DNA of 64,000 nt from Hyaloraphidium curvatum SAG 235-1 (Eukaryota; Fungi; Monoblepharomycota). Shown here piece after piece: positions 1-17,220 of this stretch. The stretch covers positions 62,001 to 126,000 of the forward strand of contig JAIVFI010000028.1 of assembly GCA_025558095.1 (NCBI GenBank). The letters run 5' to 3'. The stretch's first letter is position 1. Every line of letters begins with the position of its first letter. The translations under genes were made by a program, and so were the position numbers. The notes under the pieces are model-generated. The model ran no database searches, was not told the DNA's origin, and worked only from the letters and a program-made list of their open reading frames with translations.

Positions 1-902
1 GCCGGTCTCGGGGTTGACGTACGACACCTGCACGCGCTCCTCGCCGGCCTCGGCCAGCGCCAGCAGCGCCGCCTTGGCCTCGGCCCAGGGGTAGCGCAGC
101 ATGGGGTAGGGATCGGCGGCGCGGCGGAAGGCCGGGGTCGGGAGCACCCCGCCGCGGGCGTAGAGCTTGTCGCCGCGCTTGGCCGTGTGCCCCTGCCTCG
201 AGCCCTCGATGACGTACGACGCCTCGGCGTAGTACACGAGGGGCAGGTCGAGCACGTCCAGCCAGACCACGGGCTCCGAGCCGGCGTGCTCGTGCTCGTG
301 CCACTGCCCCGTCGGGGTGAGGATCAGGTCGCCGCGCTCCATCGGACACTTCTCGCCCGCCACGACGGTGTAGGCGCCCTTGCCCTCGACCACCATGCGC
401 ACGGCGTTGGGGGTGTGCCGGTGGGCGGGTGCGAACTCGCCGGGCAGCAAAAGCTGCATGCCTAGGTAGATCGACGGCGACGCCTGCATGTTCTCGAGGC
501 CGCGGCCGGGGTTGGCGAGGACGAGCACGCGGCGCTCGGCCTTTTCCATGGGGGTGAGCTCGCCGGCCTTGAGGAGCAGGGGGCGGATGTCCTTGTAGGC
601 CCACGCGGTGGCCTGCGTGCGTCGCGAGGGCACGCCGGGGGGGAGGACGGCGCGGAGGGATGGCCACAGGGGGACCAGGTTGAGCTTGGTCAGGTCGTCG
701 CGGTAGTCCTGCAATGGGACGAAAGAGTCAGCACGATTCTCAGCTTCAAGGGCAGTCGGCCGCGCACCTGCGGCAGATCTTCGAGCCGCCCGAGGGCCGG
801 CAGGTCCGTGATGGTCTCCTGCATCTTGCCGGCCGCCTTGGCGGCGGCCTGCGGGGCGACAGCGTGCACGCCGTTGGCGACTTCCTGGGTGACGGGGGAC
901 AT
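1..902 (-). CDS. Gentisate 1,2-dioxygenase (cupin, NagI/GtdA-like); 3' end runs off the window
   Basis: Exon 1 is 902-768, a GT-AG intron is 767-709, and exon 2 runs from 708 past position 1. The spliced protein reads LGRLEDLPQDYRDDLTKLNLVPLWPSLR...AERRVLVLANPG...QLLLPGEFAPAHRHTPNAVR...GDLILTPTGQWHEH, with the cupin His ligands typical of proteobacterial gentisate dioxygenases. Confidence 0.92.
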
Positions 903-1172
903 GCTGGTGTGCGTCGGGTACTCCGGGTGGTGAGATGCCGTTCCTTCGGGCGAATCGCTTCGGGCACGGGCGGCGTTGACTGCCTCCCGCTGCTTTAATG
1001 ACTCAAGCGTTGCCCCCCGACGGCTGCATGCGGGAGTGGCGAGGGGGGCGAAGCTCCGTACGGGGGGCAAATCGAGAGGGACCTTTAACCCCCGGTTCGG
1101 ACGGACGGCAAACCTCGTATCCTCCAGCTCACATCTCCACTCGTTGCACTCGGCACTCATTCGCCCGAAGCC
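903..1172. promoter_or_regulatory. Bidirectional promoter between gentisate dioxygenase and 3-hydroxybenzoate 6-hydroxylase
   Basis: 270 nt separate the divergent ATGs (902 and 1173). The region contains a perfect inverted repeat TTGCCCCCCG (1010-1019) / CGGGGGGCAA (1061-1070) and a CGGACGGACGG run. Confidence 0.6.
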
Positions 1173-4100
1173 ATGTCGAGCCTGAACGTGCAGAAGCCGG
1201 ACGTCGACGTCGGTGCGTCCCTTTCTCGCCGCGTCTGTATGTAATGAGGAGCTAGCAATCCCACCGTACACTTAGAAATCCCCCTACGCCCCAAGAATCA
1301 GCTCCTCATCTACATTCAAACCAAATGCGACCGGCGCGGGGGCCGGAGCGTTGACAGCGGCGGCTTCGGTGCACAGCTGAAGCCAGTGTTGGAGTTGGGC
1401 CGCGACGCCAAGAGCCCAGGCCACCGCGATCCGTTCGCGGAAGCGCCGCACAAAACGAGAGTAAAGGCCATCGAGGTCCACGGGCTGCCCATCGCGGCCG
1501 ACGATCCCGGGATACTGGATGCGCCCCATCTCCGAGGAGAAGCGCGAGAAAGTGGCAGAGACAGCGCTGTACGAATCAAAAGCAAGCACGATCAGAGGGT
1601 AGAAGTTGGCGTTGAAGACGAAACGGGAGTAGTCCTTCCTGGCGGCCTCGACCCGCCGTTCGACTGCGTGGCCCGGGACCGAGAAGACCAGGCCCGTGTG
1701 CAAATGGGCCATAGAGGTGAGGGTCTTGATCTCGAGCAACCACCGTTTCCGGGTTTCGCGGTGCGTGATGAGAACGTCGCCAAGGCGGCCAGCATCCGCA
1801 GGCGTGGGCGGGGTGACAGTCTCGTAGCCATGTGCAAGGAGGTTTGGCGGCATGGGGTGCACGCGGAGGAGCGGGATGGAGCGAAGCGCCGCGCGGATGG
1901 CCGCGCAAATGTCGTCGTGACCAGGACTGAAGAGATCCCGGCCATAGCAGCCCGAGAACGCGTGCTCCCCCGTCAGCGACATGGCCGATCGCTTGCAGCC
2001 CCGCCGGCAGGGCAAGGAAAGACCAGGGTAGTCGGCCTCGTGCAGGAGCGGGAGGCAAAGCCGGAAGCGTACAAGTAAGCGGAAAAAGTTGTTGCGAATG
2101 TGGTTGGCAAGCAGCGCGGGAGAGGCAGTCAGGAAAGCCGACAGGCCGTCCTGCGCCTGGACGAGCCGCTTGCGGCGCTCCAGACCAGCGGAAGTGGTGG
2201 GTTGCAAGGCAATCAGAGCCGCGAGGCGGCGCTGGTCCTCGAGACGCGTAAGGTCGCTCTGCAGGCCGTGCCAAACCGGCTGGGCGAAGAAACTGGCGTC
2301 CGCAGGGAGCGTACGGCGGGCGGGCGCGGCGCCCACCGGTTGCCCAGCACGCGCAGCCTCGGCGTACGCTGCGGCCGTGTCATCCTCGACACGCTCAAAG
2401 GCGGGGCGGAGGGCCTCGATGACGGGAACCAGTTCCCGCACGTGCTCCACGCCCACACCCCGGGCCGAGGTTCGAAGACCAAGCATGGCGTCCAAGGGGC
2501 CCGCCGTGAGGTTGAGTGAAGACAGGTAAGCCGCCGAGGCCACCTTCTCCGATGACAGAAGCCCCATCCCCGAGTAGTGCAGACCCAAGAATACCTGCTC
2601 CCGCACAGTCCGACCCTCCACCGACAGCGGATCCAGATCCTCGGCCCGATCTCCCAGCAAGCGCAAGAAGGTGGTGAAAAGCGCGTTGTCAAGACGTCGA
2701 GCAAAGGGTTGGGTAACCGAGGGGGGGAGAATGCGGAGCCAAAACGAGAAGAGCTGGGTCACACAGAGACGGAGGAGGGAGTACAGGCCCTGGAGGGAGG
2801 GGATGTCGGCCGGCATGGCGTAGCCGAGCGCAGCGCGCTCGATTTCATCGAGAAGAGCGGCAATGGAGTCGATCTTGGCCGCGAGGAACGACTCCACATA
2901 GGCAGGGGTGCCGACCGGGGCACCTAACACCTTGAGGCCGCACGAGCGAGCGAAGTCAGGCGAGCCCGGGGCCGACGCCGTGGCATGCGCCTCGGGGTCG
3001 GCCTCGTGAGGCGGGAAGCCAGCGACGCGGATGTTGTGGGCCGCACCGGCCGCGCGCACCCGCTCCAGCACGGCCGGGTTCGTCGAGAGCGAAAGCAGGT
3101 AGCTCTTGTCCGGGCGGTGGGTCATGCCGAGGGAAGCAAGGCTGTCACGCACCTCTCCCAGGACGGCCATGACCGAGTCCAGCGGCCCGACCACGGTGAG
3201 GTCGTCGAGGTACCCAAGGATGAGGCAGTCGGGGTGCCCAGAGCGGATGGGCCGCAGCATGCGGCTCATGGCGCAGGAGAAGATGGCAGACGACAGCGGG
3301 TCGCCCTGGATGTTGCCCTCGTACATGGTGATCCGGAAAAGGAGCTCCGCCGAGCGCCGGTCGCGGAAGTAGGCGTGGGAAGGGCGCGAGTAAACGAGGT
3401 TGTAGTACGGGATAAGCTGAGGCACCTGGCGGACCACCTCGCGCGCGAAGAGGCGGCGCAGCGTATTGAAGGCGTTCCTAGAGTCGACCTTCATGACGAC
3501 GTGGTCGGGGAAGGCCGCCAGCCACGCGTTCACCGCGTGGGCGGTCGCCTCCGCGCCCCCGTCCACCCCGTGACCCAGGTCCTCCTGCTGTTGGAGCTTC
3601 CTCAGAAGAGCCTTGTGCCGCACGGCCAGGTACGAGCCCGCGAGCCGCGTGATGCCCTCCATAATGCCAATCGGCCGGAGCCCCCCCTCCGGCTTGAGCA
3701 GAGGGACGAGGATTTGATCCGTGAGGAGCGGCCGGAGCATGGGGGTGTCGAGTCGGCCAGTGCACACGCCGTGCACCATGGCCGCCAGCGGGCGGAGCTT
3801 CCGTCGCGTCGCGTCGTTCTCGCAGTTGTGCACGATGAAAAGTTTGGCCATGCTGAAACCCGACATGCCGGCCCCCACGCCGTCCTTCTTCCGGCGCAAC
3901 CGGGCCCAGATGTCCTCCAGGAAAGCCGCGTCCGTGTAGGCAGGGCAGGGCGCGGGCGCGTTGGGGGGCAGAGACAGCCGACACAGCGGCTCTCCCTCCC
4001 GCGGCCCCGGGTACAGCTCCTCCAGTTCCGCCTGCAGCGTGGGCGTGAAGCCAGCCGGAACGGCCTCCCCCGAGAGCGCCGCGGACGCAGCACCAGGAGC

Positions 4101-7100
4101 GCCCTTCAAGGCGGCAAGCACGATGGCCTTGAAGAGCTGGTAGTTGAGCGGCCGCAGCCCGTCCCGCCGCGCGCCCCGGTTGACCTGACGGGCGGCGAAG
4201 TAGTTCTGCTCGTACATGTAGTCCCCCGACATGACGTAGCCGCCAAACGCAAGGTAGGCGGTGAGAGTGCGGTGCAGGTCGGTTTCCGGTGCCGCCGGGT
4301 CCTCGTAGGCCCGTTGGAAAGACTCGCTGGCCCGGAAGGCGAGCGTGCTCCAGGTGGTGGTCCGGTAGCGGTGCTTCAGCGGCTCCGGCGGCGGCGCCCC
4401 CGCGCCCCCGCCCGGCGGCGGATCAGGCCCGGGACCCCCGGGTGGACCACCGTCGCCTGGGTCGCCCGGATCACCGCCGTTGCCGTGCCCGCCAGCCGCG
4501 GCGTTGCCGCCCGGCGCGCCGTCGCCGCCTGGGGGATCACCGCCGTCCGGGGCGGCACGCGCCGCCGCCGCCGCCGCCGCCAGCGCCGCCCGTTGCGCCT
4601 GGACGTCCTGCGGGGCGTCGGCCGCAACCCGGGCGGCCGCAAGGGCCGCCATCAGCGCGGGCGCGGGTGGCGAAGCACGGGGAGATGCCGACGATGCCGC
4701 CGGTGACGCCGGTCCCTCCGCGCGTCCCGTGGCAGCCGCCCGCTCGGCACGCACGCGGTCGAGGAACTCGACAAGATCGGGTGGAAGCGAAGCTAAAGAG
4801 ACGCCGAGTGGCGGGTTAGCTGCGTCCGGGTTGCACGAGGTGTGCTGTCCAGAAACACCGGCACCAGAGGCGTTTGCGGCGTAGGGACGCCGGCAACCCC
4901 CGCACCGCGCGAGCCCCATGGCGCGCAACGCATCGGCAGACAGGCGCTGCATCGCCAACCAGTGCTCCGGGCTCCGTGTGACCCGAAGATGACCGTCCCG
5001 TTTGTTTTTGTTTGGAGTTGGCTGGAAGCGGCAACCATCAACCGGGCACGCATGGAGGCCGGGTTCAGCAGGCGCCTCCGCCATCGGCACATCGCCGTCG
5101 ATGCAAGATTGGTGATGAAGAGATAGAGCTCCGATGTTGGCGAAAGCTGCCGCGCAGCGGTGGCAGCTGTAAGGCAGGAGCGGCGTGCGGCTCATGGCGA
5201 ATACGGTGGCGGCGGCGATGCCGGTGTCCCGCCGCCAGGATCAGCTACCGCGGACGGTGCTTTGTCCGACGAGATATCCCAATCGTCGAGCGCATGTGTC
5301 CGCATCCAAACCTCCTGTGACTCGGTCAGGTCGCCCCCCGCCCTGTGCCAGGCCGCAAGCGCCGACCACGCGTCACCGATAGCATCACGGCCGCCGTCAT
5401 CGAGGAGCTCGGAACCTGGCCATTCGAGGTGCGCCGGCGAACCGGGCTCCGTGTGAGCATACCAAGGAGGCAAGGTGCGCGTCGGAGTGGATACTTCCGA
5501 GGAGCTCTGCCCCCCCCCGGCCGTTGGTGCCGGCGGCGTGCCGGGGGTTGTGCGGGGCGGCGCAGGCGGCAGCTGCAAGCTCGGCACGGCGGTTGCAGCT
5601 GGGGTTTCCCACGGAGGATGGCCTGGGTGCGCCGGGAGCATGGAAGCGGCCGAAGCCGGGGCATCAGCGATCAAGATCGGCGATGACGAGGAGGGAGATA
5701 CTTCCGAGCGTGCCGCCCCTTTCCCCCCCGCTGGTGCCGGCAAGCGGGAGGAGCCGCGGGGCGGCGTGGGCAGAGTGTGACCCTCGGCCAAGCTAGGCAA
5801 GCGTCTCCCAAACCTCTCAGAACTGACTTCCGCCCCCTCCAGTCGTTGTCGGCGGCGGTATCGGCGGCCTCGCGACCGCTTTCGCGCTCACCCGCAAGGG
5901 CCTCAAGGTCCGCGTGCTCGAACGCGCGCCCGAGTTCGGCGAGGTCGGCGCCGGCCTGCAGATCGCGCCCAACTGCACGCGCATCCTCGACGACTGGGGC
6001 CTGCTGGACGAGGTCGTCAGCCTCGGAGTGCTGCCCGAGAACATCGTCGCACGCGATGCGATCACCGGCAAGGAGGTGGGGATCCTTTTGCACCGTCATC
6101 TGGTGCACATCGCTGATCACGCCTCCGGTGCAGCTCACCCGCCTTGACCTCAAGGACTGCGAGCGCCGCTACGGCCACCCGTACCTCGTCATCCACCGCT
6201 CGGATCTGCACGGCGTCTTTCTACGCGCCTGCAAGCGCGTGGGCGTCGACCTCGTCACCAACGCCGCCTGCACCGGCTACGAGAACGTCGACGGCGGCGC
6301 CGTCGCCAAGTTCGGCGACCGCACCGAGCGCGCCGAGCTCGTCATGGCCGCCGACGGCATGCACTCCGTCGCCCGCCCCCTGCTAAGCGACGACAAGCCC
6401 GTCTCGTCGAGCTACGTCGCCTACCGCGGCACGCTCCCCGCCGACAAGGCGGTCCGCGAGCTCGGCGTCTCCCTCAAGGACGTCGTCGTCTACGTCGGGC
6501 CCAAGTGCCACCTTGTGCAGTACCCCCTCCGCGCGGGGGAGATGTTCAACCTCGTCGCGGTGTTCGAGTCGCCCAAGGCCGTGCGTGGCGAGGCCGACTG
6601 GGGCACCCCCGACGAGCTCGACGGCGCGTTCGCCAAGACCCACCCCGGGGTGCGGGAGTGCCTGCCCAACATGTGGCGCGACAAGTGGTGGCGCATGTTC
6701 ACCCGCGAGCCGATCATGGACTGGGTCAAGGGCCGCATCGCGCTCACGGGCGACGCCGCGCACCCGCCGCTGCAGTACCTCGCCCAGGGCGCGGTCATGG
6801 CCATCGAGGACGCCTGGGTACTTTCGGAGCACGTGGGTCTTGCGGGCGGGCCCAAGGGGTCGGCGAGCAGGGGCACCGCGACGGGGATCCCGTGGGAGAG
6901 GGTGCTCCAGGCGTACAACGCGGTGCGGCCGGAGCACTGCCGCCGCGTGCTCACGACCGCGTGGATCTGGGGCGACCTGTGGCACCTTGAGGGCGAGGCG
7001 CGCGAGTGGCGCAACAGGGTGTTCGAGGAGCGCGACACCCACTCGTACGACTACGTGGATTGGCTGGTGGGTTTCTCGCGCTTGGGCCTGGCGCTCTGTT

Positions 7101-7269
7101 CACCTCAGCTCACCTCATCCTTCCTCCTCCGCAGTACGGACCCACCGCGCTCTACCCCGAGCACGAGAACAAGATGTTCGACCCCAAGGCCTACGAGAAC
7201 CAGTCCTCCAAGAAATCCCCGCCTGCTGTGCGCCGCGACTCTTCGCAGGGCTTCGAGGCGCGCCTCTGA
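1173..7269 (+). CDS. 3-hydroxybenzoate 6-hydroxylase-like FAD monooxygenase (4 exons; intron 1 carries the retrotransposon)
   Basis: Exons are 1173-1212, 5843-6075, 6134-7066 and 7135-7269. Joining exons 1 and 2 restores [24 protein letters not shown] (GxGxxG). Further motifs are [23 protein letters not shown] and [21 protein letters not shown]. The protein ends in -ARL. Confidence 0.88.
1284..5195 (-). CDS. Retrotransposon ORF2: N-terminal zinc fingers, reverse transcriptase, CCHC knuckle, REL endonuclease (1303 aa)
   Basis: Zinc fingers are CHRC..H..C, CPVDGC..H..H and CGGC..H..C. RT motifs are [27 protein letters not shown] and KVLGAPVG. The C-terminal part has CRRGC-x10-H-x4-C, GHDD, GDVLI and LEIK. 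There are no stops or frameshifts. Confidence 0.93.
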   Translation of the reverse strand: MSRTPLLPYSCHRCAAAFANIGALSLHHQSCIDGDVPMAEAPAEPGLHACPVDGCRFQPTPNKNKRDGHLRVTRSPEHWLAMQRLSADALRAMGLARCGGCRRPYAANASGAGVSGQHTSCNPDAANPPLGVSLASLPPDLVEFLDRVRAERAAATGRAEGPASPAASSASPRASPPAPALMAALAAARVAADAPQDVQAQRAALAAAAAAARAAPDGGDPPGGDGAPGGNAAAGGHGNGGDPGDPGDGGPPGGPGPDPPPGGGAGAPPPEPLKHRYRTTTWSTLAFRASESFQRAYEDPAAPETDLHRTLTAYLAFGGYVMSGDYMYEQNYFAARQVNRGARRDGLRPLNYQLFKAIVLAALKGAPGAASAALSGEAVPAGFTPTLQAELEELYPGPREGEPLCRLSLPPNAPAPCPAYTDAAFLEDIWARLRRKKDGVGAGMSGFSMAKLFIVHNCENDATRRKLRPLAAMVHGVCTGRLDTPMLRPLLTDQILVPLLKPEGGLRPIGIMEGITRLAGSYLAVRHKALLRKLQQQEDLGHGVDGGAEATAHAVNAWLAAFPDHVVMKVDSRNAFNTLRRLFAREVVRQVPQLIPYYNLVYSRPSHAYFRDRRSAELLFRITMYEGNIQGDPLSSAIFSCAMSRMLRPIRSGHPDCLILGYLDDLTVVGPLDSVMAVLGEVRDSLASLGMTHRPDKSYLLSLSTNPAVLERVRAAGAAHNIRVAGFPPHEADPEAHATASAPGSPDFARSCGLKVLGAPVGTPAYVESFLAAKIDSIAALLDEIERAALGYAMPADIPSLQGLYSLLRLCVTQLFSFWLRILPPSVTQPFARRLDNALFTTFLRLLGDRAEDLDPLSVEGRTVREQVFLGLHYSGMGLLSSEKVASAAYLSSLNLTAGPLDAMLGLRTSARGVGVEHVRELVPVIEALRPAFERVEDDTAAAYAEAARAGQPVGAAPARRTLPADASFFAQPVWHGLQSDLTRLEDQRRLAALIALQPTTSAGLERRKRLVQAQDGLSAFLTASPALLANHIRNNFFRLLVRFRLCLPLLHEADYPGLSLPCRRGCKRSAMSLTGEHAFSGCYGRDLFSPGHDDICAAIRAALRSIPLLRVHPMPPNLLAHGYETVTPPTPADAGRLGDVLITHRETRKRWLLEIKTLTSMAHLHTGLVFSVPGHAVERRVEAARKDYSRFVFNANFYPLIVLAFDSYSAVSATFSRFSSEMGRIQYPGIVGRDGQPVDLDGLYSRFVRRFRERIAVAWALGVAAQLQHWLQLCTEAAAVNAPAPAPVAFGLNVDEELILGA
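5192..5641 (-). CDS. Putative retrotransposon ORF1 (Pro-rich, ~149 aa from ATG 5641; frame open to the element end at 5800)
   Basis: The open frame ends in a TGA (5194-5192) that overlaps the ORF2 ATG (5195-5193) as ATGA. I recognise no domain in it. Confidence 0.4.
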   Translation of the reverse strand: MLPAHPGHPPWETPAATAVPSLQLPPAPPRTTPGTPPAPTAGGGQSSSEVSTPTRTLPPWYAHTEPGSPAHLEWPGSELLDDGGRDAIGDAWSALAAWHRAGGDLTESQEVWMRTHALDDWDISSDKAPSAVADPGGGTPASPPPPYSP

Positions 7270-7485
7270 GCGATGAGTAGGAGATTGGACGATCCGAGTT
7301 GGTAATGGCTGCCCACGCACATGTGACTTTTGATGAATTGCATGATAGAGATGATCGCCTTACAGTTTCCGGCCCTTCGAATGCATCGCAGGACTTCGTC
7401 GTGCTCATCAGCCTCGAAGTTGTGGCAACGCCTTCGGCTGACTCGTCTGCTCTTCGTTTGTCCCCCACCTCGCTTCTTTCCGAAC

Positions 7486-9246
7486 ATGACGGCCCCAAAC
7501 GGGGACCGCAGCGCCGATGCCATCGCGTCCGAGTGGCTCGCCGCTTTCGGCAGCGCGCTTTCCGTGGGCGCACCGGCGGGGATCGCGGCGTGTTTCTCCC
7601 CGGAAGAGGCGCACTGGCGCGACATCCTCGCCTTCTCGTGGGACATCCGCACGACTTCCGGCGCCGGAAAAATCGCGGAGCGGCTTGCCGAACTGCTGCC
7701 CCCCGCGAAGCCGCGCGATTTCCGGTTCGCCGAGGGCCGCACGCCGCCGCGGTCCGCGAAGCGCGGTGGTCGCGACGTGGTCGAGGCCATCATCTCCTTC
7801 GAAACCGCCGTCGGACCCGCGTTCGCCGTCGCTCGGCTCGTAAAGGAGGGAGATCGTCACGCCGCTGTCTCGCTAATGACGGTCCTGGACGAGATCCGCG
7901 GGCACGAAGACCCGGCAACGGGCTCCCGCTGGCAGAACGTGGATTGGAAAAGGAACTTCGGGGGTGAAAACTGGTTGGACAGGCGCAACCGCGCAAGGGC
8001 GTACACCGACCACGATCCTGCTGTATTGGTCGTCGGTGCCGGCCAGGCGGGGCTGTCGCTGGCTGCCAGGCTGACGCAGCTGGGCATTGACGCGCTGGTC
8101 GTGGACCGAGAGAAGCGGATCGGCGACAACTGGCGCACGCGGTACCACGCGCTGACGCTGCATAACGAAACGCGCGTCAACCACCTGCCCTACATGCCCT
8201 TCCCCCCCAACTTCCCCGTCTTCATCCCCAAGGACATGCTGGCCAACTGGTTCGAGCTCTACGCCGAAGCCATGGAGCTCAACGTCTGGACCGAGACGGA
8301 GCTCTCGCACGCCGTGCGTGACGAAGCCGCCGGTTGTTGGACTGCGGTCCTCAAGCGCGCCGACGGCACCGAGCGGCTCATGCGCCCCCGCCACGTCGTC
8401 TTTGCCACCGGCGTCTCCTCCATCCCCCTCACCCCCGACCTCCCCGGCCTCTCCTCGTTCAAGGGCACCGTCGTCCACGCAGGCCACTACGGCAGCGGCC
8501 TCCCCTGGCGCGGCACGCGCGCGCTGGTCGTCGGCACCGGCACGTCGGGCCACGATGTCGCGCAGGATCTGACCGTCTGCGGCGCGCATGCCACGCTGAT
8601 CCAGCGCAGCCCGACCATGGTCGTATCGCTCAAGGAGGCCCAGTCGGCCTACGCGCTCTACGACGAGCCCATCCCCTTCGCCGACAAGGACCTGCTAGCC
8701 GTCTCCACCCCGTTCCCCATCCTGCGCAGGGTGCACCAATCGCTCACCGCCGCCGCGCGCGACGCCGATCGCCCGCTGCTCGACGCCCTCGCCGCGCGCG
8801 GGTTCCGGCTCGCCTTTGGGCACGAGGACACGGGCTGGCAGATCATGTACCAGCAGCACGGAGGAGGGTACTACTTCAACGCTGGTGCGTCAGAGATGAT
8901 TGCGGATGGCGCGGTTGGGCTGCTGCACTGGGATGACCTCGAGGCGTTCTGCCCCGAAGGGGCAAAGATGAAGGACGGCACCGTGGTACCCGCCGATCTG
9001 GTCGTCCTGGCGACGGGATACGCCTCGCAGCGCGAGACGGCCCGGCTGGCGCTCGGCGACGCGGTGGCGGAGAAGATCGGCCCCATATGGGGCTTCGACG
9101 ACGAGGGCGAGCTGCAGAACATGTTTAGGCCGACCCCGCAGAGGGGGCTGTGGTTCATTGCGGGGAGCCTGGCGCAGTGCAGGATCTTTTCCAAGGTGCT
9201 GGCGCTGCAGATTAAGGCTAGGGAGCTCGGGATCGTGGACGGGTAG
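7486..9246 (+). CDS. Flavin-containing monooxygenase, type II (N-terminally extended), intronless, bacterial-like
   Basis: Motifs are VLVVGAGQAG, GDNWRTRYHALTLH, the FMO fingerprint FKGTVVHAGHY, VVGTGTSGHD and LATGY, preceded by a ~170-aa N-terminal extension. Confidence 0.88.
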   Translation: MTAPNGDRSADAIASEWLAAFGSALSVGAPAGIAACFSPEEAHWRDILAFSWDIRTTSGAGKIAERLAELLPPAKPRDFRFAEGRTPPRSAKRGGRDVVEAIISFETAVGPAFAVARLVKEGDRHAAVSLMTVLDEIRGHEDPATGSRWQNVDWKRNFGGENWLDRRNRARAYTDHDPAVLVVGAGQAGLSLAARLTQLGIDALVVDREKRIGDNWRTRYHALTLHNETRVNHLPYMPFPPNFPVFIPKDMLANWFELYAEAMELNVWTETELSHAVRDEAAGCWTAVLKRADGTERLMRPRHVVFATGVSSIPLTPDLPGLSSFKGTVVHAGHYGSGLPWRGTRALVVGTGTSGHDVAQDLTVCGAHATLIQRSPTMVVSLKEAQSAYALYDEPIPFADKDLLAVSTPFPILRRVHQSLTAAARDADRPLLDALAARGFRLAFGHEDTGWQIMYQQHGGGYYFNAGASEMIADGAVGLLHWDDLEAFCPEGAKMKDGTVVPADLVVLATGYASQRETARLALGDAVAEKIGPIWGFDDEGELQNMFRPTPQRGLWFIAGSLAQCRIFSKVLALQIKARELGIVDG

Positions 9247-9447
9247 AGTGTGGGCGGCAAGTCGCGATCTGTACGGGGAGAGCGCCGTCCATCAGTGTGT
9301 GCCTGCATCCATGTACAAAATCAAATCGAATGGCAACCTACTCCGATATGTTGTAGTTCGGAGAGGATCCGAATGGCGGGCTTGGGCTTGGCGTCATTCT
9401 CGCGCGGCCAGCGCAAGTGGCGACATCGCGAGAACTCCCTCTTCGCG

Positions 9448-11253
9448 ATGCCCCCGAAGAAATCCGGTGTTCCTAGAAAGTCCTGCGGGCCCTGCTTCGT
9501 GGATAAAAAACGATGTCTTCCCGGCACGGCCTCGGGGGCTGCGTGCCAACGCTGCGCGACGACCGGCCGGACCTGCGACTTTGCGGGCGCAGACGTGCTT
9601 CCGACACCAATCGCGCCGCCGACCGATGACATGACTCTTTTGGACTCTTCTTTGGACGTCGACGTCGGCACGATTTTATTCTCGGGACTTGCGGAGGCCG
9701 TGGAGTCATTCGTGGCGGGCGGCGCGCTTCCCATTCTCCATCCCACGACGCTCGCCGCACCGGGCCCGACGCTGCTGCTCGCTATTGCTGCTCTGGGCTC
9801 TTCCGATCTCGATGACGCGCGGACTTTCGCCGGGGCGGCCCTGACGAGCGTCCTGGCCGGTCTGCTGGACCCCCTCGAGACGGCACAGAGCGTGGTCCTG
9901 CTCCTCCATTACGCCATTTTCCGGACAATGTCGGCGGCCGTCCCACCGCTTCTGGTCACGGGACGTGCCGCCCTGGCTGCCCTGTGTTTGGACGCCTCGG
10001 GGAGCTTCTCACAGGAGATGCGGGAACCTGCCACGGTCGAGCAGTGGATCCGGGCCGAATCAGCATTGCGCTGCTGGTGCATGTTCAACGAGCTGGACAG
10101 CGGTGTGGCCTCCTACTTTGGCGACGCGGCCCTCTTCGATGCCGCCGTGTACCCCGTGCCTCTCCCGGCGCACGACAGCTATTTCCTCAGCCCGGACCCC
10201 CAATCGTCCTTCGACGCCCTCGTCGAAGCCGGAGCGTTCGGTCCGGGCCGCTTCGCCATCTTTTCGGCCAGCGCGGAGATGCACGCGCTGGAAGCCTGCA
10301 CCGCGGCCGTGCGGCAGATCGTCGGCGCCATCTTTGACCGGCGCGCGAGCTGCCTCGCCGCGTGCTCCGTCAAGGCGTTTGTCCGCAGTCTGCGCGCCAA
10401 GCTCCGCGGTTTCGCCAGCGATCACGGAGTATGTCCGTTGGCGATCGTCGGCAAGGAACGGGACGAGTGCACGCCGGACGAGGCCACCTATTGCGACGCG
10501 CTGGACGCTCTATACGACCTCGTTGGCGTCCTGTTGGATTCCATGCCTGAAGGTGTTGGGGTACCCCTGGCCGCTGGGGAGCCGCTCCCGCTCCTGTCGG
10601 ACCCTAGCTTCCCCGACCGCACGTGCGCGCGCATCGTTTTCATCGTGGTGTTCAATGTCCTGGCTACCTGCTTCGAAGCCGCCGCCGACCCGCGGGAGGG
10701 CTCCTCATCCTTGCCCTCGGTCGACGCCCTGTTCGGCTCCCCCGCCTTCCTCCGCATCCTGGACCGCGTGCAGACCATGTGCGACCTCCTCGAGCACCTC
10801 GACGACGCCGACCTCCCGCAGCTGCACCCGACGGTCATCGTCCACATGATGCGGGTTGGCATGTTCTCCGTCGTTCTGTTCCGCGTCGTGCGGGACGACC
10901 CGGCTTCGGGCTGGGCCGCGGACAGACTGCGCAGGAACGTGGAGGACATCGCGCGCGCACTGACGGCCATGGGGAACGGCAGCGCGCCCGCCGCGGCCAA
11001 GGTCGCGGCCGATTTCGCACGGGCCGCGAGGGCCGCGGGGGCGCTGGACGAGGGGTATGTCTCGCCGGAGGTGACGGATGCGGAGCTCGGGGAGGTACAC
11101 GTCGAGTTTGCCAAGCTGGGGATCGCGGAGCGCGAGTCGCCCGTGGCCGCGCTGTCGGAAGCGATGATCCAGCTCGACCGGGGAGTGTCGACTTGGCTGC
11201 CGTCGCTGGAGGATTGGACGCGGAGGCCGATTTCGGGCCAATTGATTCCGTAG
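9448..11253 (+). CDS. Zn(II)2Cys6 transcription factor
   Basis: CGPC-x6-C-x9-CQRC-x6-C at the N-terminus, plus a fungal TF middle-homology-like segment ESALRCWCMFNELD. Confidence 0.85.
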   Translation: MPPKKSGVPRKSCGPCFVDKKRCLPGTASGAACQRCATTGRTCDFAGADVLPTPIAPPTDDMTLLDSSLDVDVGTILFSGLAEAVESFVAGGALPILHPTTLAAPGPTLLLAIAALGSSDLDDARTFAGAALTSVLAGLLDPLETAQSVVLLLHYAIFRTMSAAVPPLLVTGRAALAALCLDASGSFSQEMREPATVEQWIRAESALRCWCMFNELDSGVASYFGDAALFDAAVYPVPLPAHDSYFLSPDPQSSFDALVEAGAFGPGRFAIFSASAEMHALEACTAAVRQIVGAIFDRRASCLAACSVKAFVRSLRAKLRGFASDHGVCPLAIVGKERDECTPDEATYCDALDALYDLVGVLLDSMPEGVGVPLAAGEPLPLLSDPSFPDRTCARIVFIVVFNVLATCFEAAADPREGSSSLPSVDALFGSPAFLRILDRVQTMCDLLEHLDDADLPQLHPTVIVHMMRVGMFSVVLFRVVRDDPASGWAADRLRRNVEDIARALTAMGNGSAPAAAKVAADFARAARAAGALDEGYVSPEVTDAELGEVHVEFAKLGIAERESPVAALSEAMIQLDRGVSTWLPSLEDWTRRPISGQLIP

Positions 11254-11282
11254 GGGATGGTTGATTGGGCAATTAACCGCAT

Positions 11283-12043
11283 CTACTCCGCCTTGCCGAC
11301 CGTCAGCTCCACCTCGGCGATGCCCTCGACGCTACCCTCGATCTTGTCGCCAGGGAGCACCGCAGCGACGCCCTCCGGCGTTCCCGTGTAGATCAGGTCC
11401 CCGGCCTGCAGGTGGTAGAACTGGCTCAGGTCGGCGATGATCTCCGGGATGTCCCAGATGAGCTTCGCAACGTCCGAGGACTGCTTGGTCGCGCCGTTGA
11501 CGCTCAGCACGATCGCCCCCTTGGACACGATCTGCCCCTCCATCGGCACGATCTCGGAGCACACGCTCGAGTGCTCCACGTCCTTGCCCAGGTCCCACGG
11601 CCGGCCCTTGTCCCGGGCCTCCAGCTGCACGTCGCGTCGGGTCATGTCGAGCCCGGCGGCGTATCCATACACGATCTCGGCGGCCTTGTCGGCAAGAACG
11701 CGGAAGCCGGGCTTGCCGATGGCAACCACCAGCTCCATCTCGAAGTGGTAGTTCTTGGTCGAGGGAGGATAGGGCGTGGTGGCACCTGGAAGCGCGAATC
11801 AGTTGGAGTCCGAGCGCGACTGGTAGTAAGCACCGCACCGCTCAGGGTCAGCGTGTCAATGGACTTGGTGAAGTAGAACGGCCTCTCCACCGACTTGTCC
11901 ACCGGCCGGCCCATCTCCCGGGCGTGAGCATGGTAGTTGCGGCCCACGAAGAAGAGGCGGTTGACAGGGAACTTTCGCTGCTCGCCGCGAACGGGCAGCG
12001 ACCGGACGGGCGGAGGCTCGAACAGGTATTCCGAGGCGGTCAT
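11283..12043 (-). CDS. Fumarylpyruvate hydrolase (FAH family, NagK-like)
   Basis: Exons are 12043-11839 and 11785-11283 (53-nt intron). Motifs are VGRNYHAHAREMG, FYFTK, YHFEMELVVAIGK, GLDMTRRD, GRPWDLGKD and GDLIYTGTPEGV. Confidence 0.92.
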
Positions 12044-12291
12044 CGTGAGCGTGGGCGGAACGTGCAGACAGTCTAGACGATGCGGCAGCAGCTAGTTTGC
12101 CTGCGGACCTTTTCTGTGATTCGGGGGACAGTTGCGGGGGCGAGGCCGCGTCTATCCCCCGACTTGCCCCCCGAGGGCAAACTGCTCGACCTAGAAGAGC
12201 CGCGAGCCACGATGCCTCCCGCATTGCCTCCCGTCTTCATCGCCAGTCGCCCTCTCGGACGCTCTCCCCGACACCGACAACCACCGTCGCA
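12044..12291. promoter_or_regulatory. Bidirectional promoter between the NagK-like hydrolase and the MFS transporter
   Basis: ~250 nt separate the divergent ATGs. It contains TTGCCCCCCGA (12164-12174) plus related CCCCCGA/TCGGGGG copies. Confidence 0.5.
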
Positions 12292-14076
12292 ATGGCAGGC
12301 TGCCTTTGTGGGTGACGCCGAACGCGACGCCCGTCCCTTGGGACGCTGGCGTTGCGCGCGCTCAACGACCCGCCACTTACGCGTTTTTCTTCGCAGGGCC
12401 CGACAAGAACAAGAAGATCGATGTCGCTCAGGAGTCCTTCATCCCCGAGGGCGACTGGTCCGCGGAGGAGGAGCGCCGCATCGTCCGCAAGATGGACAAC
12501 CGCATCCTGCTCCCGTGCTTCATCATGATGTTCCTCGGCTACCTCGACCGCCAGAACATGGCCAACGCCAAGGTCCTGAACTCGGGCACCGACGAGTCCA
12601 TCGAGGCCTCGTGGAACCTCACCGGCGTGCAGTTCAACTGGGTCATCTCCATCTACGGCATCGGCCTGTTCCTCTGCGAGCCGTTCGGCAACTTCCTGCT
12701 CAAGAAGATGTCGGCGCCCAAGTGGTTCTCCCGCATCATGGTCACCTGGGGCGCGATCGTCATGTGCCAGGCCGTGGTGCACAACTTTGCCGGCGCGATG
12801 GCAACACGCTTCTTCCTCGGTGTCGCCGAGGCCGGTCTGCTCCCCGGCGTGCCCTATTACCTCTCGTTCTGGTGGGTTGCGGCCTCTCTACCTCCCGCGT
12901 TTCGACTGACCTCGGCTTGTCCTTCCAGGTACACGCAGCGCGAACGCGGCAAGCGCATGGGCGTCTCGTTCACCGGCCTCGGCGTCGCGGGCATGGTCGG
13001 CGGCTTCATCGCCATCGGCGTCTCCAACATGAACGGCCTCGGCGGCTTGTTCAGCTGGCAGTGGCTCTTTATCCTCGAGGGCATCCCGGCCATCATCTAC
13101 GGCGTCGTCCTCTTTTTCATCCTGCCCGGTTTCCCGCAAGACGCCAAGTTCCTCACCGACGCCGAGAAAGACATCGCCGTCCGCCGCCTGCCGCCCAATG
13201 CGCCTTCCGCTCTGGACAAGATCACCAAGGACGACATCCTCAAGGAGCTCGCAGACCCCGTCCTGTGGCTCTTCTTCTTCTTCCAGTTCTTGATCGCCAT
13301 TCCCAGTGGGTGTCTTTGCCGTCTGCAGCACCCGATCCGCCCTCACCTCCTCGATCTCGCAGTCGCTGGCTCCTCCGCCCTGCTTCCCTCGATCATTCAG
13401 GGTCTCGGCTTCAAGACCTCGGTCCAGGCCAACGGCATCGCCGCCCTCTCGCACGGCTGCAACACCATCGCCATCCTGATCAACAGCTGGCACTCGGACT
13501 GGACCAACGAGCGCATCAAGCACATCATCTTCACCATCGCCTTCTTCCCGCTCGTCGGCTCCCTCCCCCTCGCCATCACCGCCCTCAACCCCTCCGCCGT
13601 CCCCGCCGGCGTGCGCCTCCTCTTCGTCCTCCTCGCCGGCCTCACCACCTCGGCCTACCCCATCATCTGGGCCTACCGCGCCAACAGCTCCAAGGGCACC
13701 GGCCGGGCGACGGTCAACTCGGCCTTCACGCTCACCGCCTACGCCGGTGCCCTCGTCGTCGGGCCGTTCCTGTTCCCCAACAAGGACGCGCCCAACTACG
13801 TGCCCGGCATGTTTGCCTCGTACGGCTGCTACGCCATTTCGCTCCTTTGCTTCATCCGTGGGTCTTGGACGCCTTTGCGCGATGGACAGGCTCTGAACCA
13901 CCCTACCTCCAGCCATCCCCTACATCCTCCGCTACCAGGCCGCGAAGAACGTCGAGGACATGCAGATCATGGAGACCGGCCACCACGCGGCCATCGCGAT
14001 CCCGATCGGCAAGGTGGCCCCGGAAGTCGCGGCCGAGATCCCGGAGAAGGCGCCTGTCGCCGAGGAGAAGATCTAG
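12292..14076 (+). CDS. MFS transporter, anion:cation symporter (Dal5/Tna1-like) family, multi-exon
   Basis: Motifs are EERRIVRKMDNRILLP, YLDRQNMANA, RFFLGVAEAGLLPG, YLSFW|YTQRERGKR, WQWLFILEG and DAPNY. Several short introns are in-frame. The first exon is inferred. Confidence 0.88.
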
Positions 14077-17100: not shown

Positions 17101-17220
17101 GGCGCGCTCGAAGTGGGAGCGGAGCGCCCCGCGCTGCCGCCCGAGCTCGGCGAGCTTGATCCGCGCGAGCGCGTGCAGCTGCCCCTGCGCGCCGCCCGCG
17201 GTTTTGTCCGCGTGCAGCAT
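14179..17220 (-). CDS. rvt: rvt-class cellular reverse transcriptase-related protein (5 exons)
   Basis: The N-terminal coiled coil is LARIKLAELGRQR. Further motifs are ANLKSFVDQA, WLFGKVLEEW, EYATVL, WDW, GDVADFYLSI..VLEFFG, RGVPLAHSLS, RVVDDVHFF, GL.ENPNKCGS, LPQGPVTWNFL, WPI|TAGGLGLMNP and YYKWLL..FGSL. It has spliceosomal introns and no endonuclease or TSD. Confidence 0.85.

Follow-up and report, generated by a model that had tools for sequence, protein, structure and literature searches.

The question raised by this locus is how the fungus Hyaloraphidium curvatum SAG 235-1 came to possess a set of clustered genes for 3-hydroxybenzoate and gentisate catabolism whose enzymes resemble those of bacteria. 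The window analysed is a stretch of 64,000 nucleotides (positions 62,001 to 126,000 of contig JAIVFI010000028.1), and the cluster occupies its positions 1-14076. This locus, hereafter copy A, is very probably one of two nuclear copies of a 3-hydroxybenzoate/gentisate cluster of multi-donor bacterial origin, for which both a pathway and a history can be proposed. The derivation of its four enzymes from three bacterial lineages is supported by protein searches and trees. Together with its relatives, the cluster affords a view of how a eukaryote may build a pathway stepwise from borrowed genes.

Layout of the cluster and its second copy

All six genes of the original prediction were found in the order and orientation given there (Table 1), namely those for gentisate 1,2-dioxygenase (GDO), 3-hydroxybenzoate 6-hydroxylase (3HB6H), a type II flavin-containing monooxygenase (FMO), a Zn2Cys6-like regulator, a NagK-type hydrolase and a major facilitator superfamily (MFS) permease. 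Both divergent pairs, GDO with hydroxylase and hydrolase with permease, were confirmed, as were the introns in three enzyme genes: those for GDO, the hydroxylase and the hydrolase contain GT-AG introns with native sizes of 53-68 nt. Three features had been overlooked, which are the partial GDO gene, a retrotransposon in hydroxylase intron 1 and a second copy of the cluster. The GDO gene lies only partly in the window, its 3' end being 311 bases left of position 1. The order and orientation of the genes stand, but their adjacency does not hold throughout, because the retrotransposon separates GDO from the body of the hydroxylase gene.

Table 1. Features of copy A, with positions counted from the first base of the window
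Feature	Position	Strand	Evidence or remark
GDO exon 2	1-708, extending 311 bases beyond the left edge of the window (full exon = L001:1189-2217)	-	six-frame translation
GDO intron, 59 nt, GT-AG, CTGAC branch site	709-767	-	splits LEDLPQ/DYRDD
GDO exon 1, 45 codons	768-902	-	translation, alignment
Bidirectional GDO/hydroxylase promoter	903-1172	.	inverted half-sites TTGCCCCCCGA (1010-1020) and ACGGGGGGCAA (1060-1070)
Hydroxylase exon 1, 13 residues, phase 1	1173-1212	+	translation, splice sites
Hydroxylase intron 1, 4630 nt	1213-5842	+	holds retrotransposon; native ~60 nt
Non-LTR retrotransposon, 4570 bp	1232-5801	- (antisense to hydroxylase)	within hydroxylase intron 1
Retrotransposon 1303-aa ORF, zinc fingers and RVT_1	1284-5195	-	RVT_1 E 3.8e-10
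Retrotransposon upstream ORF	5192-5800	-	upstream of the 1303-aa ORF
Hydroxylase exon 2, GGGIGG FAD-binding fold	5843-6075	+	translation
Hydroxylase intron 2, 58 nt	6076-6133	+	not present in L014 or L019
Hydroxylase exon 3, catalytic core	6134-7066	+	shares 62-72% identity with Actinomycetota proteins
Hydroxylase intron 3, 68 nt	7067-7134	+	between VDWL and YGPT; position occupied in L014 and L019
Hydroxylase exon 4	7135-7269	+	homologous to bacterial C-terminus; ends in PTS1-like ARL
Type II FMO, 586 aa, intronless	7486-9246	+	Pfam FMO-like, Pyr_redox_2
Putative Zn2Cys6-type transcription factor, 601 aa	9448-11253	+	Cys spacing CX2CX6CX9CX2CX6C
Hydrolase exon 2 (stop codon 11283-11285)	11286-11785	-	FAA_hydrolase E 8e-34
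Hydrolase intron, 53 nt, phase 1	11786-11838	-	absent in L014 and bacteria
Hydrolase exon 1	11839-12043	-	translation
Bidirectional hydrolase/MFS promoter	12044-12291	.	palindrome TTGCCCCCCGAGGGCAA (12164-12180)
MFS permease, anion:cation symporter type, several short introns	12292-14076	+	MFS_1 E 1.5e-22

The second, rearranged copy of the cluster (copy B) lies at C28:153832-165479, 90 kb from copy A. It lacks the FMO gene and the retrotransposon, and its hydroxylase intron 1 is 58 nt long, with the same intron position being found in a related eukaryotic contig (L014). The copy B GDO protein at NCBI (P0001) shows the same splicing as copy A. The retrotransposon, a recently active element whose insertion accounts for the 4630-nt length of intron 1 in copy A, makes up one third of positions 1-14076 and is present genome-wide in at least 40 copies of 96-100% identity, nearly all of them 99-100%.

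The 4.6-kb insertion may impair the copy A hydroxylase, and copy A could be a decaying duplicate in which the retrotransposon has put the hydroxylase out of action and the FMO has no part in the pathway, being carried along as a passenger. This alternative, which we consider rather unlikely but worth weighing, is favoured by the enlargement of intron 1 from ~60 to 4630 nt by an antisense insertion, by the public gene model P0241, in which a truncated hydroxylase is fused to the FMO, and by the presence of the FMO in copy A only; the examined parts of L014 and of a second related eukaryotic contig, L019, contain nothing resembling an FMO, and the gene context of the FMO in bacteria is unrelated to gentisate. 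However, every reading frame and splice site of copy A is intact, its proteins are 96-100% identical to those of copy B, and the insertion is, as judged from several other copies of the element with 100% identity, very recent.

As for regulation, two occurrences of the 11-mer of the GDO/hydroxylase promoter were counted in the window, where 0.06 would be expected, and the copy B promoters hold versions of it with one or two mismatches. The inverted-repeat motif common to the cluster promoters, which is the sole evidence for co-regulation, suggests that the genes may respond together.

Affinities of the enzymes, the permease and the regulator

Protein searches with GDO, the hydroxylase and the FMO covered 5.8 billion proteins, and in each of the three H. 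curvatum was the sole named fungus among the best 120 matches. In the trees, GDO, the hydrolase and the hydroxylase nest with support inside their respective donor clades, and the FMO was placed by an unrooted quick-search tree. The predicted likenesses of GDO to betaproteobacterial NagI (search and phylogeny), of the hydrolase to betaproteobacterial NagK (search, operon neighbourhood and tree), of the hydroxylase to the actinobacterial, Rhodococcus-type 3HB6H (search, tree and full-length match to the Rhodococcus jostii enzyme) and of the FMO to intronless bacterial type II FMOs (search, match to 8ACS and grouping) were all borne out.

The HRH and WHEH motifs of GDO (H99, H101, H140 and H142), which we take from GDO structures to be the metal ligands of the N-terminal cupin of this bicupin Fe(II) enzyme, are invariant in alignment A1. 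GDO matches the solved GDO structures 2D40 (E 9e-60, residues 8-333) and 3BU7 (E 1.7e-46) and is 69% identical to a Polaromonas naphthalenivorans protein named gentisate 1,2-dioxygenase in UniRef. It scores below the NCBIfam equivalog cut-off of TIGR02272 (244.7 against 442.1 bits, with exon 2 as a query spanning the whole profile), a shortfall that may reflect subfamily rather than function. Its identity to Burkholderiales GDOs is 66-73%; among the best 120 of 4848 matches, the named organisms other than H. curvatum are all betaproteobacteria (69-73% identity), and 72 of the best 80 species-genome loci are titled Betaproteobacteria, the remainder consisting of unclassified bins, two MAGs that were probably mis-binned, two Alphaproteobacteria and one member of the Hydrogenophilia. 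In a careful tree, the eukaryotic GDO sequences form one clade (99/96) within the Burkholderiales/Rhodocyclales radiation. The first ~33 residues encoded by exon 1 are an N-terminal extension missing from bacterial GDOs, and the intron site is uninterrupted both in the bacterial homologues and in L014.

The hydrolase is 65-78% identical to the gene adjoining GDO in 62 of the 80 Burkholderiales-type loci and is placed inside a betaproteobacterial clade with support of 99/98, and an AU test does not reject a single eukaryotic clade (p 0.29). From its FAA_hydrolase domain and its orthology with the gene after GDO, it is predicted to be a fumarylpyruvate-hydrolase-like member of the FAH superfamily. 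Because GDO and hydrolase genes are adjacent in donor-type operons, the two were most likely acquired in one event, which gives three donor lineages for the four enzymes.

The hydroxylase is assigned to the group A flavoprotein monooxygenases. The near-identical copy B protein matches the R. jostii RHA1 3HB6H structure 4BJY over its full length with E 1.6e-122 (residues 10-406 against 6-394) and conserves His and Tyr in the motif CH..QYP and Gln in PPLQYLA, residues ascribed to the substrate site of the R. jostii enzyme. All named organisms among the best 120 hydroxylase matches other than H. curvatum are Actinomycetota, and in a tree rooted on the hydroxylases of betaproteobacterial operons the protein is nested among Actinomycetota; the root is a very long branch, and the bootstrap value of the eukaryote clade is only 86%. 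Exon 3 alone scores 211 bits against the NCBIfam equivalog cut-off of 459 for NF006021, a profile that appears to describe the other subfamily, since a betaproteobacterial operon hydroxylase scores 690 bits on it. The C-terminal tail suggests a peroxisomal location.

The FMO is a single-copy gene whose closest paralogue in the genome is 34% identical. It carries two Rossmann motifs and the N-terminal extension of the family, which place it in type II (class B), and its homology to 8ACS extends over the full length with that extension included (E 4.5e-102, residues 24-583 against 38-604). 8ACS is the type II FMO of Janthinobacterium svalbardensis (PMC10028610). The protein is 65-77% identical to Acetobacteraceae-like proteins, with which it groups, and the genes of its closest bacterial relatives lie between CN_hydrolase and amidohydrolase genes, not in aromatic-acid clusters.

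The permease and the regulator were expected to be of eukaryote type, and both belong to large families of this genome. The closest Atlas clusters of the permease are eukaryotic without exception, and intron-bearing paralogues in the same genome reach 53-71% identity, as compared with 32-34% for the best match in GDO-carrying betaproteobacteria. The permease also matches TIGR00893 (E 4e-49) and HpaX (E 1.5e-25), both under the curated cut-offs. Tracing of its introns covered the first boundary, and in-frame introns are placed at about 12873-12929 and 13308-13367. The putative regulator has at least 60 paralogous matches in the genome; its Fungal_trans match is weak (E 0.067, 12.7 bits against a cut-off of 23), and at threshold it has no Pfam Zn_clus match, the two copy B paralogues giving weak matches below the cut-off (E 0.036 and 0.064).

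Related eukaryotic loci and the history of the cluster

Two other eukaryotic contigs carry parts of the cluster. L014, which is syntenic with H. curvatum in coatomer and V-ATPase genes, holds GDO, hydrolase and hydroxylase genes, and L019 holds GDO and hydroxylase genes whose products are 71-81% identical to those of H. curvatum. The position of hydroxylase intron 3, PTS1-like hydroxylase tails and a C-terminal PNM extension of GDO are common to all three organisms; the L019 GDO intron occupies a site of its own, four codons from the H. curvatum position. Because both the GDO/hydroxylase pairing and the hydroxylase intron position recur in these contigs, the core of the cluster is older than H. 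curvatum. The original prediction of a mosaic built in the fungus from acquired parts thus stands with respect to multiple bacterial donors, but the core was assembled in an ancestor and not in this species.

In the proposed history, a GDO-hydrolase segment would have been acquired from a Burkholderiales-type operon, the donor operon's own hydroxylase would not have been retained, and the step would have been filled by an actinobacterial 3HB6H. The trio would already have been united in an ancestor common to at least one close relative, and at least the GDO/hydroxylase pair in one common to the more distant eukaryote. The evidence leaves us evenly balanced on whether this trio was assembled once in an ancestor and its introns then gained in a datable series, in which hydroxylase intron 3 and the addition of the peroxisomal, PTS1-like tail would come first (common to all three organisms), hydroxylase intron 1 next (common to H. 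curvatum and its close relative L014), and hydroxylase intron 2 with the GDO and hydrolase introns last (H. curvatum lineage only). If true, these genes, whose ancestral state is known to be intron-free, would record the gain of spliceosomal introns as a natural time series. A permease and Zn2Cys6-like regulators from large families of this genome would have been recruited beside the enzymes and placed under promoters with a common inverted repeat. Finally, the modules would have been duplicated in H. curvatum, with copy A also holding an FMO of Acetobacteraceae-like origin and its hydroxylase intron 1 recently hit by the retrotransposon.

The assembled cluster could instead have been passed laterally from one eukaryote to another, the L019 organism being one possible recipient, in which case its presence in three organisms would not date it to a common ancestor. 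The L019 ELO gene, at only 62% identity to that of H. curvatum against 71-81% for GDO and the hydroxylase, would fit such a transfer, and the gentisate cluster of Candida and Mucorales has been proposed to have moved as a cluster between distantly related fungi (PMC5144973). Vertical descent to L014 and L019 may also account for the pattern, and the branching order (L019, (L014, Hc)) of the GDO and hydroxylase trees agrees with the order of housekeeping-gene similarity; we regard spread between eukaryotes as improbable.

Somewhat less probable still is a single donor, an unsampled bacterium whose ready-made mosaic operon, with GDO and hydrolase of betaproteobacterial type and a hydroxylase of actinobacterial type, was passed whole to a eukaryote in one event. 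Mosaic make-up is frequent in bacterial aromatic operons, the same GDO/hydroxylase pairing occurs in three eukaryotic loci, and GDOs of this clade already cross bacterial class boundaries, as identical rows in the tree come from Sphingomonas, Sphingobium, Curvibacter, Comamonas and Pandoraea assemblies. Yet the two types were found together on none of the bacterial contigs inspected: a hydroxylase gene lies nearby in 55 of 80 Burkholderiales loci and its product shares only 32-38% identity with the fungal enzyme, the best hydroxylase match in 301 sampled betaproteobacterial genomes is 38% identical, and the actinobacterial clusters L015 and L016 carry a GDO at 29% and a hydrolase at 31% identity. 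Acquisition from several bacterial donors thus remains the favoured reading. That the gentisate enzymes of Dikarya (Candida Mnx2, Gdx1 and Fph1) are closer kin is provisionally considered unlikely from the absence of Dikarya among the best 120 matches and in the well-supported clades, in trees built without these enzymes.

Bacterial contamination or a chimeric assembly, as might be suspected from the 62-74% G+C of the region and the identity of about 70% between its proteins and bacterial ones, has a negligible probability, given five spliceosomal introns within bacterial-derived coding sequence, two diverged cluster copies, an inserted host retrotransposon, a GC3 equal to that of the two housekeeping-gene exons checked, the same genes with the same introns in independent assemblies, and eukaryote-type genes on both sides of the cluster within one 607-kb contig, where the ordinary-looking neighbours include a DRG GTPase gene. 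The introns, the eukaryote-type neighbours, the host retrotransposon, the second copy and the independent assemblies likewise support physical integration of the genes into the nuclear genome.

Proposed pathway and comparison with known systems

On the basis of homology, the permease may import a hydroxybenzoate, which the hydroxylase, possibly in the peroxisome, would convert from 3-hydroxybenzoate to gentisate; GDO would then open the ring of gentisate to form maleylpyruvate, and the NagK-type hydrolase would cleave fumarylpyruvate to fumarate and pyruvate. The intervening isomerization of maleylpyruvate to fumarylpyruvate could be catalyzed by an enzyme whose gene is not part of the cluster; the most likely candidate is an intron-bearing gene on contig 16, which is the only GST-zeta-like gene found in the genome. 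The isomerase had been expected outside the window, perhaps to its left; the first part agrees with this result, but the 10 kb directly left of the window contain no maleylpyruvate isomerase gene. A whole-genome search found no isomerase match on the contig of the cluster and no mycothiol-dependent isomerase in the genome.

The gentisate cluster of Candida parapsilosis comprises MNX2, GDX1, FPH1 and HBT1 with a nearby transcription factor (PMC5144973, PMC5566891, PMC8929692). Both fungal clusters unite a 3HB6H, a GDO, a fumarylpyruvate hydrolase, an MFS permease and a transcription factor, and both lack a maleylpyruvate isomerase. The Hyaloraphidium enzymes fall in bacterial clades, with GDO and hydrolase 66-78% identical to bacterial proteins, and no Dikarya protein is among their best matches. 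The Hyaloraphidium permease is of the anion:cation symporter type, whereas that of Candida is of the AAHS-like Hbt type; moreover, the Hyaloraphidium cluster includes an FMO and has no GFA-family gene beside it.

The betaproteobacterial operons of the nag/mhb type (L008, L010 and the 80 loci L034-L113) are MarR-regulated and contain hydroxylase, GDO, hydrolase and GST genes. They resemble the fungal locus in that the hydrolase directly follows GDO and both fungal genes belong to that clade (66-78% identity). Their hydroxylase, GST-type isomerase and MarR regulator are missing from the fungal cluster, whose genes are interrupted by introns, encode proteins with N- and C-terminal extensions and are arranged divergently, not as an operon. 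The actinobacterial clusters L015 and L016, with an IclR regulator and GDO, hydrolase, mycothiol isomerase and R. jostii-type 3HB6H genes, share only the hydroxylase type with the fungal cluster; the fungal protein is colinear with theirs over its full length at 62-72% identity and keeps the catalytic motifs, unlike the GDO and hydrolase noted above.

Bacterial genes acquired by fungi include the siderophore operon and thiamine-salvage genes of Wickerhamiella/Starmerella yeasts. As in those cases, the Hyaloraphidium genes are integrated in a fungal genome, have eukaryotic gene features and are still clustered. They differ in that at least three donor lineages appear to be combined in one cluster, the genes were received by an early-diverging fungus, and an ordered series of intron gains can be proposed from related eukaryotic contigs.

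Organization of the cluster and its place in the nuclear genome

All six genes that the original prediction had placed at positions 1–14076 were found there, including the two divergent pairs of gentisate 1,2-dioxygenase (GDO) with hydroxylase and hydrolase with MFS permease. The spliceosomal introns that it had proposed for three enzymes are also present as GT-AG introns in GDO, the 3-hydroxybenzoate 6-hydroxylase (3HB6H)-type hydroxylase, and the NagK-type hydrolase of the FAH family. The enzyme introns (five of five GT-AG) have a native length of 53–68 nt and CTGAC-like branch sites.

Features of the gentisate cluster (copy A), in window coordinates
Feature	Position	Strand	Remarks
GDO	exon 1 768–902; intron 709–767; exon 2 from 708 to 311 bases left of the window	minus	intron 59 nt
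Hydroxylase, 3HB6H-type	exons 1173–1212, 5843–6075, 6134–7066, 7135–7269	plus	
Non-LTR retrotransposon	1232–5801	minus	4570 bp; 1303-aa ORF with RVT_1; inside hydroxylase intron 1
Type II flavin-containing monooxygenase (FMO)	7486–9246	plus	586 aa; without intron
Regulator	9448–11253	plus	601 aa
Hydrolase, FAH-family	11839–12043 and 11286–11785	minus	intron 53 nt
MFS permease	12292–14076	plus	

The cluster is nuclear fungal DNA. Contamination was rejected on the basis of spliceosomal introns in bacterial-looking genes, a host retrotransposon inside one of them, a eukaryote-type flank, and the 607-kb length of the contig. The window (C28:62001–126000) is part of a 31.9-Mb assembly, and public protein records from the contig carry the name of Hyaloraphidium curvatum, a member of Monoblepharomycota. 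Read by eye, the ORF translations of the adjoining 10 kb to the left (L003) include a DRG GTPase, a lipase, and a flavohaemoglobin as well as a VanZ-like gene. The flavohaemoglobin-like gene (L003:1001–2310), whose translation contains a globin and an FAD/NAD-binding reductase, is about 8 kb away from the cluster. Right beside the cluster on the other side, two long minus-strand ORFs (15282–16916 and 14929–15699, within 14179–17220) gave no Pfam match. The GC3 of the enzyme genes (0.87–0.96) equals the value of about 0.95 for the two housekeeping-gene exons checked, which is uninformative for dating because the donors and the host are all GC-rich.

The original prediction had missed both the retrotransposon in hydroxylase intron 1 and a rearranged second copy of the cluster (copy B, C28:153832–165479) about 90 kb away on the same contig. 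At least 40 copies of the retrotransposon occur genome-wide; nearly all show 99–100% identity, and the full-length ones (about 4.56 kb) number about 20. The family thus seems to be active at present or to have been so until very recently, and the insertion in copy A is young. Each junction of the element carries a CGTCT repeat, perhaps a target-site duplication. In public records, the protein model P0241 (898 aa, "hypothetical protein"; 6344–9243) is chimeric and joins the 3' part of the hydroxylase to the FMO, probably because the gene caller was defeated by the retrotransposon-bearing intron. Copy B is arranged as the pairs hydroxylase|GDO and then MFS permease|hydrolase, followed by a tandem pair of regulator paralogues; the FMO and the retrotransposon are missing, and its hydroxylase intron 1 is 58 nt long. 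Between copies A and B, protein identity is 96–100% for the enzymes and the permease and only 65–68% for the regulators (tblastn; 9448–11253 versus C28:161377–165479, i.e., L006:1377–5479). The enzyme modules were either homogenised by gene conversion or duplicated after the regulators. When the copy B permease (C28:158677–160089) is read through, one TAA appears at a point where the copy A frame is open; it may be intronic or the mark of a broken gene.

Probable bacterial sources of the enzyme genes

Database searches were run exon by exon, and each copy A gene was represented in the phylogenetic trees, which hold no Dikarya homologues, by its largest exon (GDO exon 2, hydroxylase exon 3, and hydrolase exon 2). 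Among 5.8 billion proteins, the best 120 of 4848 matches to GDO exon 2 comprised the H. curvatum paralogue (97%) and then only proteins with 69–73% identity, the named ones belonging to Burkholderiaceae, Polaromonas, Ramlibacter, and betaproteobacterial MAGs. The MAG contig with the best match carries the operon MarR / hydroxylase-GDO-FAH-GST, in which GDO and FAH are 72% and 71% identical to the window genes and the hydroxylase is 34% (main exon) or 42% (short exon 2) identical. In a species-level bacterial scan (one genome per species), the best 80 GDO loci showed 66–73% identity; the titles of 72 name Betaproteobacteria, in most cases Burkholderiales. A hydrolase homologue (65–78% identity) lies directly downstream of GDO in 62 of the 80 loci, and an upstream hydroxylase, present in 55, is 32–38% identical to that of the window; no matches to the FMO, the MFS permease, or the regulator were found in the flanks of these loci. 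In a careful maximum-likelihood tree, four eukaryotic GDO sequences form one clade (99/96) within the Burkholderiales/Rhodocyclales radiation; one sequence from Psychrobacter and one from a betaproteobacterial MAG branch outside. Hydrolases of H. curvatum and of L014, a contig of another eukaryote (SRR23967301), fall within a betaproteobacterial clade of 30 rows (99/98); the tree itself leaves their mutual position unsettled, and eukaryote monophyly was not rejected by an AU test (p 0.29).

Two observations concern individual bacterial loci. Identical GDO and hydrolase proteins occur under the labels Sphingomonas, Curvibacter, Sphingobium, Comamonas, and Pandoraea (L051, L052, L053, L055, and L057), and three of these five assemblies are of strains sharing the prefix "H39-"; this identity suggests a mobile element or cross-contamination among the assemblies. 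Two MAG loci labelled Chitinophaga pinensis (L069) and Spartobacteria (L097) have GDO and hydrolase sequences beside Malikia and Curvibacter in the trees, and their contigs are probably mis-binned.

The hydroxylase has a different affiliation. The exon 3 search returned the copy B protein (reported at 100%), an 82% identical protein from an SRA assembly, and then matches at 62–72%; the named ones among the best 120 are all Actinomycetota, for example Streptosporangium, Nonomuraea, Intrasporangium, Geodermatophilus, and Streptomyces. In a careful tree rooted with hydroxylases of betaproteobacterial operons, the eukaryotic sequences and one metagenomic protein form a clade (86/98) among Actinomycetota, and the best match in 301 sampled genomes of the GDO-donor class reaches 38%. 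The Streptosporangium contig has the arrangement IclR / GDO-FAH-mycothiol isomerase-hydroxylase, and its GDO and FAH share only 29% and 31% identity, respectively, with those of the fungus. Over its full length, the copy B hydroxylase matches the Rhodococcus jostii 3HB6H of known structure (4BJY, E 1.6e-122), and it keeps the active-site motifs. A single donor that already possessed the mosaic operon was sought in the 80 Burkholderiales loci, the 301 genomes, and two actinobacterial contigs and was not found there.

For the FMO, the best 120 matches show 65–77% identity, and the named ones are Acetobacteraceae (Caldovatus, Roseomonas, Belnapia, Sabulicella, and Crenalkalicoccus), one Reyranellaceae MAG, and one unclassified alphaproteobacterial MAG. 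The closest match resides on a contig of 71% G+C with TctC and transposase genes, and in a quick unrooted tree the fungal FMO groups with three metagenomic proteins of this kind, beside Caldovatus. The gene is single-copy in the H. curvatum genome (the next paralogue is 34% identical), and its product matches the Janthinobacterium type II FMO (8ACS) over the full length. In both Acetobacteraceae genomes inspected (L118:4022–10919 and L119:4293–10752), the orthologue has CN_hydrolase genes on both sides and an amidohydrolase gene upstream; in L118 a TctC gene comes after this block, and a CN_hydrolase gene is also near the FMO on L017, the contig of the closest metagenomic match. This neighbourhood looks like an uncharacterised catabolic module, and the bacterial FMO context gives no hint of a gentisate-catabolic role. 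The donors originally proposed thus gain support for each enzyme: GDO and hydrolase nest in betaproteobacterial clades in the per-protein phylogenies suggested at that time, the Rhodococcus-type hydroxylase nests in Actinomycetota and matches 4BJY, and the bacterial type II FMO has Acetobacteraceae-like relatives and a full-length match to 8ACS.

Related clusters in other eukaryotes and the proposed order of events

Contigs of two other eukaryotes contain related genes. L014 (11.9 kb, 57% G+C) encodes GDO, hydrolase, and hydroxylase with 69%, 72%, and 82% identity. The adjoining coatomer and V-ATPase genes run colinear with contig 27 of H. curvatum (about 73–85% DNA identity), which holds no cluster copy at the corresponding site. 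L019 (SRR26194948; 55% G+C) has GDO (72%) and hydroxylase (71–81%) side by side, and its ELO gene shares 62% identity with the H. curvatum one. A second GDO-like gene of L019 (L019:3762–4901) is 34% identical to the window GDO. Used as a stand-in for the Dikarya-type GDO, it has bacterial nearest clusters in the Atlas protein-cluster resource; ten 50%-identity representatives named in the same effort to place Dikarya-type GDO bear only Psychrobacter and alphaproteobacterial names.

The hydroxylase intron between VDWL and YGPT occupies the same point in H. curvatum, L014, and L019, and actinobacterial homologues are uninterrupted there. The three eukaryotic hydroxylases end in ARL, PKL, or AKL, a tail absent from actinobacterial homologues, and a C-terminal PNM extension is found in GDO of all three eukaryotes and not in bacteria. 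Only H. curvatum and L014 have hydroxylase intron 1. L014 lacks three other introns of H. curvatum, namely intron 2 of the hydroxylase and those of the hydrolase and GDO, and the L019 GDO intron lies four codons from the H. curvatum position. These shared introns, tails, extension, and gene pairing indicate that the mosaic core is older than H. curvatum and that introns were added stepwise. Of the proposal that the mosaic was built in the fungus from horizontally acquired parts, the multi-donor origin is upheld by the trees, and the place of assembly has to be moved to before H. curvatum.

Fungal gentisate clusters and the uptake of bacterial genes by fungi are already known. What is unusual is a single eukaryotic catabolic cluster that can be dissected gene by gene into its sources. 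Judged from sequence affinities, two enzymes probably derive from one bacterial operon type, the first pathway enzyme was probably replaced from another phylum, and the fourth enzyme probably comes from a third lineage. Since the ancestral enzyme genes were intron-free and related contigs hold intermediate states, the locus can be read as an ordered record of intron gain, peroxisomal-tail gain, and conversion of an operon to divergent promoters. It adds a case from Monoblepharomycota, an early-diverging fungal phylum.

Proposed pathway, permease, and regulation

[quoted passage not shown] The maleylpyruvate isomerase had been suggested as possibly lying left of the window; ORF translations of the first 10 kb there (L003) include none, and a betaproteobacterial GST isomerase query had no match in L003 or the first 16 kb of the window. 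In the whole genome this query matched only on contigs 16, 4, and 5; the only GST-zeta-like gene found, which bears introns, is on contig 16, and neither cluster copy holds an isomerase. A mycothiol-dependent isomerase (query from the actinobacterial cluster L015) was not found in the genome, and GFA-family genes, the candidate isomerases of Candida, are present with none near either cluster copy on the contig. The Candida gentisate cluster is likewise reported to lack a maleylpyruvate isomerase gene (PMC5144973).

The permease and the regulator are members of large gene families of this genome, in agreement with the eukaryotic type assigned to both. At least eight paralogues of the permease, with introns, occur in the genome (up to 53–71% identity per exon). 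In three betaproteobacterial genomes that carry GDO, the best permease matches reach 32–34%, and the nearest Atlas clusters of the permease, as a lead only, are all eukaryotic. The regulator shows the six-cysteine spacing of Zn2Cys6 proteins and has at least 60 family matches in the genome; Pfam Zn_clus gave no match to the copy A regulator even at E 10, and family scores for Zn_clus and Fungal_trans stay below threshold. Within the 64-kb window there are exactly two occurrences of the 11-mer TTGCCCCCCGA (0.06 expected), one per bidirectional promoter, where it is arranged as inverted repeats; the copy B promoters hold versions with one or two mismatches. The TTGCCCCCCG inverted repeat is a candidate target of the regulator.
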